Part shown: positions 3,077-9,000 of the stretch, one piece after another | Layout of the letters: each line of letters begins with the position of its first letter | Position numbering within the stretch: position 1 is the first letter of the stretch | Assembly: GCA_964035545.1 (NCBI GenBank) | Contig: OZ037765.1 | Location: forward strand, 11,356,698-11,420,697 | DNA from: Bugula neritina | Lineage: Eukaryota > Animalia > Bryozoa | DNA length: 64,000 nt | Direction: 5' to 3' | Program-made: the position numbers and the translations under genes | The notes under the pieces: model-generated | Seen by the model: only the letters and a program-made list of their open reading frames with translations | The model's database searches: none | What the model was told of the DNA's origin: nothing

Positions 3077-6000
3077 TTGAAAAGTTTCTTGTTGCCAACA
3101 TAGTAGTCAAAATGGCTCCCTACAACACCAGAAAAGCAGAAATTAAACTCGGCATCCAAAGCACAGAAAAGAATAAACCTCTTATTCAAGTTTTAATTAG
3201 CATAATATTAGTTTAAAAAAGTAAAGAAACTTTATTAAACTTCAATGAATCATAACAGACCTTAAGCTTCCTCCTAGCATTGAATTTTTTCAGGCATTCC
3301 ACAGTCTCCTGTCTGTGCATAGCAGAAGCCACTCTGTCTCTTTGCTGCCAATTGTGACAAAAATTGTGACAGAGAATAACTTACAGTAATCAGAACAAGT
3401 GATGAGAGCATAAGGAATCCACACATAACATGTTATATATGATCTATATATAGAATATTGATAACTCCATTAGATTCATTATAGATGTGGAAGATTTACA
3501 GGAGAACACAATTACAACTGAGTTCAAATTTTAAAAAGGTCAAACAACTACTATTTAAATTAGCGCTGACTGAATACAGCTGTGCAATTGTATGTATGAT
3601 GACTAGTGAGCAAAGACTACTCACGCATATCCATGGATGTTTTAATGCATCAGATGCGGTGATTCTCTTGCCAGGATTGACAGCCAGCATACTGTTGATA
3701 AGATTTTTAGCATCTGGTGTCACTGTATCCCACTCTGGTGAAGGGTACTAAATATAGACATACAGACCAGCTGTAATGAAAAGACTCCCTGCTAACTATT
3801 TCCATAGAAGTTTGTATAAAAATTGCTAGTTAAATAAATGGTTACAAGCATAGGGGAAAGTTTAATTACTCACGTCATAAGCCCCAGCTTTAATCTGTGC
3901 ATACAGTTTGTGTTGATCTTCATCCCAAAATGGTGGGTATCCAACAAGCAGGATGTACAAGATAACTCCACATGCCCAAATGTCAACTGGCTTACCATAA
4001 GGATCCTTCTTCAGTACTTCTGGGGAGAGATAGCCAGGAGTGCCAGCAAACCCTGAAGTTGGTTAATATTAAAGCTAAAGACCGGCTTATATAAAAATAT
4101 TAACCAGGGCTTACTTTTCAAAATGCTGATAGTCACCGAGTGCATTGATTGGGGGTCTTGAGTTTGGAGATTTGAAGTTCATAATATTATACGGATGTGT
4201 ATACAAATACTATACTCAGTCACCCCCAACTTGGTGCTGCTTCAAGCAATATTCTTACTTTTCAATGCTGAAAGTCGCAGCTTCTATATCCCAAAGTAAT
4301 TGAATTTTTATATCTTAATATAGAAAATCTTATGAGGTGAAAAAGGTAATTAGTTAAATAGTTGTCAGCTATAAGTATTTTTTGCAGTAGCATGCATTAC
4401 CTTGATTAATACAGTCATAGTAAAATGGCAGTAATGCAATCGCAGTAGCAGGTAAAATGCAACAGTTTTTGCAGTATGCAAGCCTCAGCAAAATTGTTTT
4501 GCTAACGCCTAGGATTTCTATTTACAGCATATATATTAGTATATACATTCTTAATGGCAGTGAAAGTGGCTGTAGCCTTTTCTTCTAATCATCAATATAG
4601 TGGTAAACATTCCTCTCATATCTAATACATATCATGCTTATTACTCATTGAGGCTTAGCAAGCATACAATATATTTACTGTAAATACTGCATTCCTGTAT
4701 CCACATTATAATAGCTAATAAATGACGTATTATCAAAATATAGTCTCATTTGGTGGCATCAAAAACACAAAATAACATTTATTATCATCAACTATAAAAA
4801 TGTATACAAGTTGAAAACTACAAATGTGTGCAACTATTGCGTCAGATGTGTTTGGAGTTTACCATCATGGCTGATAAATACATCAAAAGATGAACTTCTG
4901 CCAAGTGCTGGATTTTATATAAAACAATTAAGTGTGATTAGGAATTGTCTACTCAATAATCTGTAAAATCTGTTGAGGTGGTGAATCCATTTATAGAAAT
5001 GAATAATTATGTTGAGAAAGTGTATGAATATTTCACTGCTTCAAGCTAAGAATAAACAAATTCTTAGTACATTTACAAAATAATAAGGTACCAACATTCA
5101 CAAACAAGTAAAAGCAACAAGTGAGTTCACTAGTTCTGCTTCATAGAAAATGCAATTATGACATATTTGAAGATTCTGCCCACTATAACAATGCGTGACC
5201 TAAATAAACGTTCAAGATTAGGTACTAACCAAACCATGCTTGATTTTCGCCATTCACTTCTATAGCAAGACCGAAATCTGCCAGCTTGACCGCAGCACCC
5301 TTGTGTTTACTTGCCAACAAAAGATTTTCCGGCTAAAACATGCAACGTAACAAAGATAGAACATAGTATTGATATTCATACTGAAAACATTATATACTTT
5401 AAACATTTGACTGCGACTCAAATGACGGCTTCATATCTTATAAGTTCCTTTTCAGCATTACACATTCAACTCCTAGGGGGATTGAACTTTACAACTCAAC
5501 AGAATTCAATTGAAAAAGTTATATTCAACTTCAATAATGAATAGATAATTGCCAGTAGCATAACAAGTTCACAAGCAAATTAACAGCTTAAACAGGGTGT
5601 AAATATGACAGACTGCAAAGCTAAAGAATCTTTAAATGAATTGAATTTTAGTACTTATCACCAAAATCAGGATTCATACCCATAAAGGAAGTAATACTAC
5701 AACACACAGAAACAGTAAAAACAGGAGAAAAATGGTTAAATTTTTTAATATGAGGCTGAAGCATTATGTAATTATAGCAATAAAAACATTATCAATTTAA
5801 TACATTATTCAATTACACACTTGACACATAACAATGAGATTGGTGTAAAATTTCAAATGACACTAGGTTTTATTAAACTGACCTTTTACATTCTTAACTT
5901 AAACCACATTGTATTAAAAACTAACAGGCAATGGCAATACGTTCAGTCCTACCAACATGTTTACCTTTAAGTCGCGATGAACAACCATTTTGTCATGGCA

Positions 6001-9000
6001 GTAACCTACACTTTCAAGAATCTGTTGCATACAGTGGCTGAAATAATAACACGAGATGAAAGAGTGTTATTAAGTGTTACGCCTCTACACCTAACGTATA
6101 AGCACGCACACACAAACACGCACGGAGGAACACTAGGCCACACGAATGAGCTAGGGGGGAAAATGAATGAAAAAAATGAAACAGATAGTCACAAGCAAGA
6201 AGCATCAAGAGTTTAAAAGGTAGAGAGAGAGAGCATGCTCTAGAGGAAAGGAAATGACTGCCAGGAATTGAAACAATGTAACATTATTTAAAAATTATAA
6301 CTTTTTTACATCTTTACAAGTGACAACATAAAGAGTTGCATATGTTGTGACATGATATGTAGAGGTTGTTGAAAATCTAGGCACAGCTGAAACAAAAGCT
6401 ATGACTTCTTCAAATATGTTGAGAAGCTAGCCCTGGTGTCTGCCTGTATATTGATGATGCTTAGATTGACGGAAACTGTTGCTATAACTGCTTACAATGT
6501 TGCATGTTGGAGACAAAACGCATCAAGAAATTACTCAAAATTCAGAGCATCACTTGAATAAACAGCAGGGTTGTAGTTGAAAAATGCTGCTGAGGTTGTT
6601 ACAATATTAGCACAGTTAGTTATTTAGAGACTGTGTGTTTGCCAAGCTGACTTGAATCACAACATCATAGCCGGATTTCATTTATACCACAAACCAAAGT
6701 TCTTGCCTCCCAACTACAAGATTGTTTTAGCATGCAGTCATCATATATATGATATCCTGGATTTGTCCACCCACCATATTTATCATATCATAATATCAAA
6801 AAAAGCAGCTCTATGCATATCCCAGCTATCTACTTGCAGATTTCAAAAAGTGGTGGGGAAAAGAATATAGCAGTGAGTAAGAAGTAAGCAGTAATTAGTT
6901 AAAATAGCTAGCGTGATAATAGCTAAATGTTAGGCTGAGCAGCAACCAAATTGGTAAAACGTTGCCAACAAATGCAGCAGATTAAAAACAAGAAGAAATA
7001 AAATGAGAGAATAGAAGTGCTGGTACACTGTAATTGATAGGGCGTGCAGATAAAGTAGAGCAGCCTAGTGTGTTCCAATGTCCCAAACGTACCTTCAAGT
7101 CCCTATGTATAATGCTATTATTATGACAGTGGTGAACGCCGTCCAGAATTTGATGTATGCAGTAACTGTAAATAATGAGACGAAGAGAGTTTATTTTATG
7201 AAATACTAATGTTCTAAATCAGAATCTGAAAGGATATCTCTAAGTAGCAGGGTAGAACTTAAAGCTTGGTTTACCTCTCAGAACTACACAATTATGAAGA
7301 TGCAAGCGAGAAATAATTCAGCTAGAAACTAAGAATGATATAAACTAAAACCTACATCACAAAATTTTCTCACTTTTAGAAAATGTTCTGCACCTCAAAA
7401 ACCAACTAAGATCTTATAAAATAATATGTAATAAAAGTTTTTTGCAGCAGTTCTATTTGTGGCATATGTGAAGCACTTAATACAATAGTAAAGCTGGGTT
7501 TATGCAAGTTAGAATTAAAGGGAGCAGCTGTGGTCTAGTGGTCAAAGACCTGGCCTAGTCAGCCCTAGGCTATGGGCTCTAATCCCTGGTGAGGTCATTG
7601 GTGATGTCAGGAAAGACCATGTACTACAGGCAAAAGCCCCCAAATCATGATGGGGAGAGGTACAGTCCTTAGCTAGTTGAGAAACCTTTAAGGGGCTTTC
7701 ACAGGGTGAAGTATAAGCAAATATAAGTTTTGTTTACAGGCTGTAACTAGAATTTTCACAGCTCCAAATAGTGGTGGTCGCATAAAGCTAAATTGGTCAT
7801 TCTGATCAAAGATTATTTTGATATAATTTCAGCATTGTAGAAGAACTGAAGAGAAGTCACCCAACCACCATTGATCTTTGCAATAATGCCAAACCAAAAA
7901 TTCTCTGTAGATAAGCCACAGGCAGTTCAACTAGTTAGCTGAATAAGACTTGGAGAGATAAAATAGAGCACAACATCAACACTGCTGAGCCCAGTTAGAC
8001 CAGAAGAAATAGACACCCAGAGTTACAATTGAAAATAGTTAAAACTAGTTGTTGTTAGCAAAGAAATAGACATACAGGAAAGCAAGCTGATGAAATCCAG
8101 TTATTCAACTTACAGAGCACCAGAAATTATTTGTTGAAATAAAGCAGGAATAATTAAGTGTCATTTTATTGCTGCCGAGTGACCTTTATCTTCAAAGTGA
8201 GAGTACATACTCTACACTGTGAGTGAGAGTACATACTATACACTGTAAGTGAGAGTACATACTATACACTGTAAGTGAGAGTACACACTCTACACTGTAA
8301 GTGAGTGTACATACTATACACAGTGAGTGTGAGTACATACTATACACTGATAGTGAGAGTGCATACTCTACACTGATAGTGAGAGTGCATACTCTACAGT
8401 GATAGTGAGAGTGCATACTCTACAGTGATAGTGTGAGTGCATACTCTACACTGATAGCGAGAGTACATACTATACACTGATAGTGAGAGTACATACTCTA
8501 CACTGTAAGTGAGAGTACATGCTCTACAGTCTACACTGATAGTGAGAGTACATACTCTACACTGATAGTGAGAGTACATACTCTACACTGTAAGTGAGAG
8601 TACATACTCTACAGTCTACACTGATAGTGAGAGTACATACTCTACACTGATAGTGAGAGTACATACTCTGCACTGTGAGTGAGAGTACATGCTCTACAGT
8701 CTACACTGATAGTGAGAGTACATACTCTACACTGATAGTGAGAGTACATACTCTGCACTGTGAGTGAGAGTACATACTATACACTGAGAAGAGTTAGGGT
8801 ACCCATAACAATAGGGAAGACTGCATAACCCAAGTGATACACTGACAACAGTAATGCTGCTGTATTATGTCAACTAATGTTTCTCCAAATCCTATAATAT
8901 TTTAATTATGCAGTAGCAGTATTACTAGACCATATCCTAGCAAGGGAAGATGAAGAGTTGTAAGATAGAGCTGAAGTGAGTGAACTCAGAAGGGAATGTA

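Follow-up and report, generated by a model that had tools for sequence, protein, structure and literature searches.

The window analysed here, a stretch of 64,000 nucleotides (nt) from the bryozoan Bugula neritina (assembly GCA_964035545.1, contig OZ037765.1, positions 11,356,698 to 11,420,697 of the forward strand), contains the 5' two thirds of a CaMKII gene, in whose kinase domain one exon is present as two adjacent homologous copies. RNA contigs of four sequencing runs support mutually exclusive use of the two copies, which are referred to as exons 6a and 6b. We hold with a probability of about 0.85 that they constitute an old and conserved mutually exclusive pair, which provides two kinase cores from one gene. 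The RNA support in B. neritina, the orthology of the copies across protostome phyla, and the greater age of the vertebrate pair relative to the vertebrate paralogues are new here. The vertebrate CAMK2D pair at the same exon was already known, and the mollusc forms were present, unremarked, in public isoform models.

A reading of this DNA made from its letters alone (the sequence-only reading) had described two exons of 73 nt in the same phase, separated by 1055 nt and both ending in HRDLK, together with a common upstream donor at 9639. The coordinates confirm this arrangement (Table 1). Exon 5 ends in ...GCCAG/gtatgt, with the donor after 9639. Exon 6a is bordered by the acceptor ...tatttacag/ and the donor AAG/gtacgt, and exon 6b by ...attatttcag/ and AAG/gtaaac; all four sites are of the ordinary U2-type GT-AG class and have decent pyrimidine tracts. 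A split serine codon is completed by either copy, as the AG of exon 5 is joined to a T or C from 6a or 6b, and both exons finish on the complete lysine codon of HRDLK. The two are thus tandem-duplicated exons in the usual sense, being adjacent homologous copies of equal length and phase with splice sites of their own.

The copies are identical at 46 of 73 nucleotides, and the 24-residue peptides that they encode differ at 12 positions; the earlier count of 13 in 25 was one too many. Both peptides find CaMKII chains as their best matches in the PDB (E 1e-6 to 4e-6), and both match positions 103-125 of the Pkinase profile, which indicates that the likeness of the exons is not due to chance. By the general anatomy of kinases, the encoded segment comprises helix alphaE and strand beta6 and reaches into the start of the catalytic loop. 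All differences between the copies precede HRDLK, whose catalytic residues are the same in 6a and 6b. What is exchanged is therefore alphaE and the strand before HRD, and not the catalytic loop, as had been proposed. In the human CaMKII alpha chain (3soa), the exon spans chain positions 114-137. A word search with the open frame around 6a (7060-7218, minus strand), for which only proteins of 29-93 amino acids were eligible, returned no candidate.

The use of both copies was followed in Logan contigs from four runs (X1, X3, X6 and X10) of four studies, which were placed on positions 3200-8150 of the window (4951 letters). This stretch left out exon 5 and intron 5, and joints to exon 5 are visible as loose ends alone. 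The introns 3344->3625, 3747->3874 and 4051->5229 are gone, with GT-AG ends, in all four runs, and this removal of constitutive introns identifies the contigs as spliced RNA. The joint of exon 7 to 6b (5332->5965) occurs in 4/4 runs, and that of exon 7 to 6a with 6b skipped (5332->7093) in three of them (X1, X3 and X6; not X10). Neither copy is thus an exon that is never spliced in, a circumstance that would have spoken against the proposed switch. On the upstream side of 6b, the contigs of all four runs continue into 27 letters that correspond, with one synonymous difference, to the last 27 nt of exon 5; because these loose letters are the end of exon 5, 6b directly follows exon 5 and does not follow 6a. 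A joint between 6a and 6b (7093->6037) is not listed in the four runs, whose contigs drop rare variants, and no RNA contig depth is found within the intron between the two copies. The depths of the contigs representing the two forms, which serve as a rough guide, are 1122 vs 748, 104 vs 107 and 125 vs 128. These joints support the earlier claim that exactly one of the exons is used per mRNA.

The length of the exons adds a second constraint. Because 73 leaves a remainder of one when divided by three, inclusion of both copies, or of neither, shifts the reading frame, as had been recognized from the letters, and early stops are found in both cases. With both exons included, 6b reads PLYATDS and stops after seven codons; with both skipped, exon 7 reaches a stop at codon 24. 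Decay of such forms is expected from these early stops. The wrong products would terminate well upstream of later exon junctions and would be subject to nonsense-mediated decay, and exclusivity would be maintained at least by the reading frame.

Exon 8 alone was searched against a representative library, and the loci of proteins found in this way or in a region-restricted protein search were scanned in six frames for stretches resembling exon 6. Pairs were recovered from a sea slug, a lung fluke, a nematode and a fish (Table 1). In every pair the copies measure 73 nt, have the same phase and AG..GT borders, and lie between the exon ending in ..SEADA and the exon encoding PENLLL. A divergent a-type copy precedes the b-type copy in the window, in Elysia marginata, in Paragonimus westermani and in Steinernema carpocapsae. 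The arthropod check comprised one mayfly locus and protein clusters. The mayfly locus has no intron after ..SEADA, so that exon 6 is fused to exon 5, and an intron of 121 nt precedes the PENLLL exon; more than 85 insect and chelicerate protein clusters contain one exon-6 type only. Insects thus appear to carry a single exon-6 copy now.

Among 120 mollusc CaMKII entries, both types are found as alternative isoforms in public annotation, the b-type being in the majority. The a-type, with a pattern ending in.[IV]IHRDLK, is present in Octopus, Haliotis, Lottia, Solemya and Pinctada, and a heterobranch variant of it, RCIQQVLEGINSCHQHNIIHRDMK, in Physella, Biomphalaria, Elysia chlorotica and Aplysia. 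The region-restricted search brought up gene models carrying both copies in a read-through for the annelid Owenia fusiformis, the snail Nucella and the nematode Dictyocaulus, as well as for several fishes (delta-type, beta- or gamma-like genes) and a lizard. In the read-through proteins (P0291-P0308, P0201, P0303), which come from fishes, a lizard, two nematodes, an annelid and a snail, the alphaE-HRDLK segment is duplicated, and the two segments are joined by intron-derived or truncated sequence; this is a recurring error of public annotation that is caused by the tandem exons. A full-text literature search, with most subscription journals outside its reach, returned no description of alternative kinase-domain exons in the CaMKII of an invertebrate. 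In a survey of mutually exclusive exons of Caenorhabditis elegans, unc-43 is present only for the alternative acceptors of exon 14 (PMC4165533).

The two bryozoan copies correspond to different copies in other protostomes. The a-type follows the pattern ..CI.QIL[ED]GV.HCH.N[SN]IIHRDLK and is marked by G at position 9 and I at position 19, both of which are present in 6a. The b-type pattern ends in ....VHRDLK; its marks, M at position 3 (in spiralians) and Y at position 12 (in all protostomes), are present in 6b. Exon 6a has 79% of its residues in common with the Octopus a-type and 75% with the a-types of Owenia and Nucella, against 54-65% for the b-types of these animals; set beside the 79% of the Octopus a-type, the b-type figure is 54%. 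Exon 6b shares 71-80% of its residues with protostome b-types and 46-67% with a-types, and its identity to the downstream type in molluscs and the annelid reaches 79-80%. The fluke and nematode a-types show a weaker likeness to 6a (54-62%). Overall, the mean identity is 0.74 between copies of the same type vs 0.61 between types. A maximum-likelihood tree was computed from 32 exon peptides over 24 columns, with the vertebrate variants included. In this tree all of the protostome upstream copies (11/11) fall on one side of a single branch, with an ultrafast bootstrap of 87, a Shimodaira-Hasegawa-like approximate likelihood ratio test value of 93, and presence in 86% of the bootstrap trees. The protostome downstream copies, the single exons of arthropods and both vertebrate copies lie on the other side.

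This evidence argues that the 6a and 6b types would be orthologous across several protostome phyla and arranged in the same order. Bryozoans, molluscs, annelids and flatworms have kept the a-then-b order, as some nematodes apparently have as well. The pair is, with good confidence, at least as old as the ancestor of spiralians. An origin in the protostome ancestor, with a later loss in arthropods, is somewhat favoured. Of the two options given by the sequence-only reading, an ancient bilaterian switch or a convergent one, the antiquity can now be extended to spiralians at least and probably to protostomes; a shared origin with the vertebrate pair is less probable. The further claim that selection acts on both copies is supported, since each has orthologues of its own in molluscs and the annelid.

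Given this conservation, decay of 6a (or 6b) into a pseudo-exon, whose inclusion would be splicing noise with no functional protein, is very improbable. Such decay would be in line with the greater divergence of 6a from the fly and human CaMKII proteins (15/24 residues identical, the fly protein included, vs 18/24 for 6b) and with the run X10, from which the 6a joint is missing. However, 6a has retained an intact frame, AG/GT borders and a complete HRDLK, and three independent studies show it joined to exon 7, with contigs about as deep as those of 6b. Moreover, the a-type is carried by mollusc RefSeq models and an Aplysia entry, and the lineages of 6a and of the Octopus and Owenia a-types separated over half a billion years ago, such that their present identity is possible only under purifying selection.

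A number of points weigh against an old pair with strictly exclusive splicing, and the first of these concern the RNA. The joint between exon 5 and 6a is not among the printed rows: the 6a contig stops 3 nt upstream of the exon, at a CAG that is common to the intron and to exon 5. The data are assembled contigs and not reads, and show presence rather than absence or proportions. Rare mRNAs with both copies or neither could exist, and the contigs are blind to regulation by tissue or stage. The label of the runs as RNA was guessed by a tool, and the GT-AG joints with their introns missing leave RNA as the sole sensible source. Others concern the tree. With 24 columns, approximately unbiased (AU) tests reject none of the hypotheses: neither a sister relationship of bryozoan 6a and 6b (a difference of -11.2 log-likelihood units, p 0.16) nor a clade of nematode copies 1 and 2 (p 0.41) is rejected, and the fluke and nematode upstream copies form long branches. 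Finally, we know of no animal in which the two cores have been shown to function differently.

These AU results would also be compatible with a bryozoan pair that is specific to its lineage, the same exon having been duplicated independently many times in protostomes, and recurrent tandem duplication of one exon across lineages is documented in general (PMC9741552; PMC3342872). We consider this improbable. The order of an a-type upstream and a b-type downstream is the same in four phyla, the type-specific residues (G9 and I19; M3 and Y12) are common across phyla, and identity within types exceeds that between types. Besides, the upstream copies form one group with the support given above, and the cost of forcing the bryozoan copies together is considerable in terms of likelihood. 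An old pair of two orthologous types is thus preferred.

The gene that carries the pair extends on the minus strand from approximately 16,050 down past 3,260 of the window, and its hub domain is located approximately 6 kb past the window start. Three exons there match PF08332 (E down to 2.7e-8) on the same strand, at 11349510-11350810 of the contig. By strand and proximity they are assigned to the same CaMKII gene, with a putative transcript that runs from exon 10 to the hub exons. PF08332 marks one locus in the entire 216-Mb assembly, and this single hub locus indicates that the gene is the only CaMKII gene of the animal. The kinase exons, each searched singly, match Pfam Pkinase, and exon 8 shows 93-97% identity with proteins named as CaMKII; a protein with a 100% identical exon 8 (P0003) was found on a metagenome contig of 865 bp. 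The kinase domain is followed by the regulatory segment RQET...FNARRKLK, which together represent the CaMKII architecture. Searches were made with single exons, and full-length comparisons with database proteins of other species.

Table 1. Features of the B. neritina CaMKII gene (window coordinates) and exon-6 copies at loci of other animals (locus coordinates).
Feature	Position	Strand	Description and support
Exon 5	9639..9704	-	66 nt; ends with AG of the split Ser codon; common upstream exon; sequence
Exon 6a	7093..7165	-	upstream a-type alternative exon, 73 nt, phase 1; AG/GT borders, Pkinase and PDB matches, RNA
Intron 6a-6b	6038..7092	-	1055 nt; coordinates, no RNA contig depth
Exon 6b	5965..6037	-	downstream b-type alternative exon, 73 nt, phase 1; AG/GT borders, Pkinase and PDB matches, RNA
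Exon 7	5230..5332	-	common downstream exon, acceptor for 6a and 6b; RNA joints, Pkinase
Exon 8	3874..4052	-	activation segment, APE motif, helix alphaF region; Pkinase E 2.7e-16; joints in 4/4 runs
Exon 9	3625..3747	-	end of kinase domain; Pkinase match; joints in 4/4 runs
Exon 10	3260..3344	-	regulatory segment: RQET autophosphorylation-site motif, start of calmodulin-binding segment; translation; joint 3344->3625 in 4/4 runs
Minisatellite	8196..8787	.	intron 5; 26-nt unit, ~22 copies, 85% matches; Tandem Repeats Finder
Elysia marginata (sea slug), L005	upstream 19558-19630; downstream 25416-25488		upstream copy RCIQQVLEGINSCHQHSIIHRDMK
Paragonimus westermani (lung fluke), L006	upstream 13535-13607; downstream 20479-20551		upstream copy TCIYSLLDAVQYCHDHNVIHRDLK
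Steinernema carpocapsae (nematode), L007	upstream 4565-4637; downstream 4941-5013		upstream copy NCIQQVLEGVHFCHRSNVLHRDLK
Metynnis hypsauchen (fish, camk2d-like), L008	upstream 60941-61013; downstream 62677-62749		upstream copy of delta-6A type; downstream copy of EAVLHCHQMGVV type
Ephemera danica (mayfly), L009	7098-7229		one copy, fused to exon 5; no downstream copy

In exons 7 to 9, the RNA differs from the genome at six positions (3694, 3967, 4012, 5279, 5282 and 5284), and all six differences are synonymous, which points to purifying selection on the gene. These positions, as well as one base of exon 5 near 9670, differ from the assembly alike in all four runs. The sequenced animals thus share an allele or lineage unlike that of the reference individual, which may point to cryptic lineages within the species. 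Contigs of low depth are also found in all four runs at 4196-4254 of intron 7, where they cover approximately 40-60 nt and run into unrelated sequence on both sides; they probably derive from a repeat or from a different transcript, and not from CaMKII. The minisatellite of intron 5 (approximately 590 nt) reads in one frame as a repeated pseudo-peptide of 25 amino acids, and has no known part in the choice of exon. A long TA/TATA-type microsatellite at approximately 16800-16950, translated as YIYIYI.. in every frame, is located upstream of where coding would begin, in the putative first exon.

With regard to how one copy is selected, steric exclusion was rejected as a mechanism, since the 1055-nt intron between the copies is too long for it. 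An ungapped search for inverted repeats at 5200-9720 of this single genome, by which weak or long-range structures can be missed, gave no convincing pair of docking and selector elements. The six inverted repeats in this region are 14-16 nt long and 81-87% complementary. Competing RNA base-pairing, with a docking site and one selector per exon as in insect Dscam exon 6 or 14-3-3xi, would choose the exon beyond the effects of frame and decay. Competing structures are common at clusters of tandem-duplicated exons (PMC6071210; PMC7797038, ATE1), and the similar depth of the 6a and 6b forms implies a regulated or balanced choice. However, none of the inverted repeats has one arm for two partners near both exons, and we regard such base-pairing as an unlikely determinant of this pair. 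Beyond the reading frame, the choice between the two exons would be controlled by splicing factors.

According to the preferred reading, each mRNA would take one exon-6 copy between exons 5 and 7, with the consequent formation of two kinase cores. These would differ at the 12 positions in alphaE and the strand before the catalytic loop and be unchanged in the rest. As judged from the sequence, both isoforms are predicted to be active kinases. The cores probably differ in the packing of alphaE and beta6 on the catalytic loop and ATP site, or in the surface of the C-lobe that is involved in autoinhibition or hub docking. Differences in kinetics or regulation, with use in different cells or stages, are also probable. 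Because several protostome phyla have maintained the two exon types as distinct forms, different roles of the two cores are likely.

Accounts of CaMKII splicing deal almost exclusively with the variable linker. A conserved switch in the kinase core was noticed only lately in mouse Camk2d, and the same kind of switch is seen here in an animal with a single gene, where both forms are expressed. Snails, Aplysia, octopus, flukes and some nematodes would provide systems of one gene and two cores in which alphaE/beta6 can be studied in the absence of four paralogues.

In mouse Camk2d, exons 6A and 6B form a mutually exclusive pair, which is conserved in human (Genes Cells 2025, PMC12060085; RefSeq NM_001025439). 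Exon 6B lies downstream and is present in ~10% of olfactory bulb transcripts and in none in heart or soleus, and the significance of the switch "remains to be elucidated" (PMC12060085). The statement of the sequence-only reading that vertebrate CAMK2D has two versions of exon 6 agrees with this work and with the fish camk2d-like locus. CAMK2D is also included in a survey of human tandem-duplicated exons, where its duplication is assigned to Chordata (PMC9741552, supplementary file 1). According to the same survey, the variable region crosses the domain, with a cluster of residues that adjoins the ATP site, and convergent duplication of the same exons is frequent in fly and human (PMC9741552).

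Vertebrate genes other than delta (P0293-P0301 and P0304, from fish "beta-like" genes and a lizard) likewise retain a pair of exon-6 copies, the first of them gamma-like (HCIHQIL[DE]SV..IHQHDIVHRDLK) and the second of the alpha/beta type (EAVLHCHQMGVV). Because beta- and gamma-like genes of fish and lizard keep two copies, the vertebrate pair predates the four paralogues, which would have come to use different exon-6 copies later.

A single duplication in the bilaterian ancestor would make the protostome a- and b-types the counterparts of the vertebrate pair, whose first copy is of the delta-6A or gamma type and whose second is of the alpha/beta or delta-6B type. Arthropods and single vertebrate paralogues would then have undergone losses. 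The exon, its length of 73 nt, its phase and its borders are indeed the same in fish camk2d and in protostome genes, and the vertebrate pair is older than the paralogues. Trees in which the protostome upstream copies are placed beside vertebrate copy 1 or vertebrate copy 2 are not rejected by AU tests (p 0.375 and 0.334, respectively). By contrast, in the best tree both vertebrate copies accompany the protostome b-types and the arthropod single exon and are not split by type. Constraining the two vertebrate copies to form a clade makes the tree no worse than the free one, alternative vertebrate placements giving p 0.33-0.53. Neither vertebrate copy has G9/I19 or M3/Y12, and the published dating is to Chordata and not to Bilateria (PMC9741552). 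A single bilaterian origin is therefore rather doubtful, and 24 residues are too few to decide between shared and convergent origin with vertebrates. If it were true, bryozoans, molluscs, annelids, flatworms and some nematodes would still run the original system of one gene and two cores, which arthropods would have lost. On this same reading, the alpha/beta (EAVLHCHQMGVV) and gamma/delta (ESVNH[CI]H..[GD]IV) cores, today distributed among four vertebrate genes, would have begun as two splice forms of one ancestral CaMKII gene.

Close counterparts of the bryozoan pair are known in molluscs, and each bryozoan exon is 79% identical to the corresponding mollusc type. RefSeq and GenBank isoforms of Octopus bimaculoides, O. 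sinensis, Haliotis, Physella, Biomphalaria, Lottia, Pinctada and Aplysia display the same two exon types. These isoforms are automatic models, and the genomic order in Elysia marginata matches that of the bryozoan. The bryozoan 6b has DKM where the mollusc b-type has Q[HN]G, before VVHRDLK. The fish camk2d-like pair corresponds to the bryozoan one in the exon concerned, its 73-nt length, phase, AG..GT borders and flanks (..SEADA and PENLLL), and HRDLK is kept. In vertebrates, however, the usual exon lies upstream and 6B, of the EAVLHCHQMGVV type that is constitutive in alpha and beta, is the minor downstream form, whereas in three runs the contigs of the two bryozoan forms are of similar depth. 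The vertebrate copies lack the marker residues of the protostome a- and b-types, and the bryozoan pair is located in the only CaMKII gene of the animal, as opposed to the four paralogues of vertebrates.

In a broader context, Dscam1, 14-3-3xi and ATE1 likewise have tandem homologous exons of equal length, one of which is used per mRNA (PMC6071210, PMC7797038). In contrast to these systems, the bryozoan cluster shows no docking and selector complementarity in the inverted-repeat search, and it has two members whose length is not a multiple of three, such that the frame alone removes wrong combinations. A mutually exclusive pair within a kinase core that keeps the catalytic residues is also found in FYN, as exons 7A and 7B (FynB/FynT; PMC9741552). 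FYN differs in being a tyrosine kinase, in the location of the exchange (the SH2-kinase linker and N-lobe, and not alphaE/beta6), and in that a functional difference has been measured for its forms. In paralogues that originated later, a single one of the FYN exons was retained in each, and in a similar way vertebrate CaMKII alpha/beta and gamma/delta use different exon-6 types.

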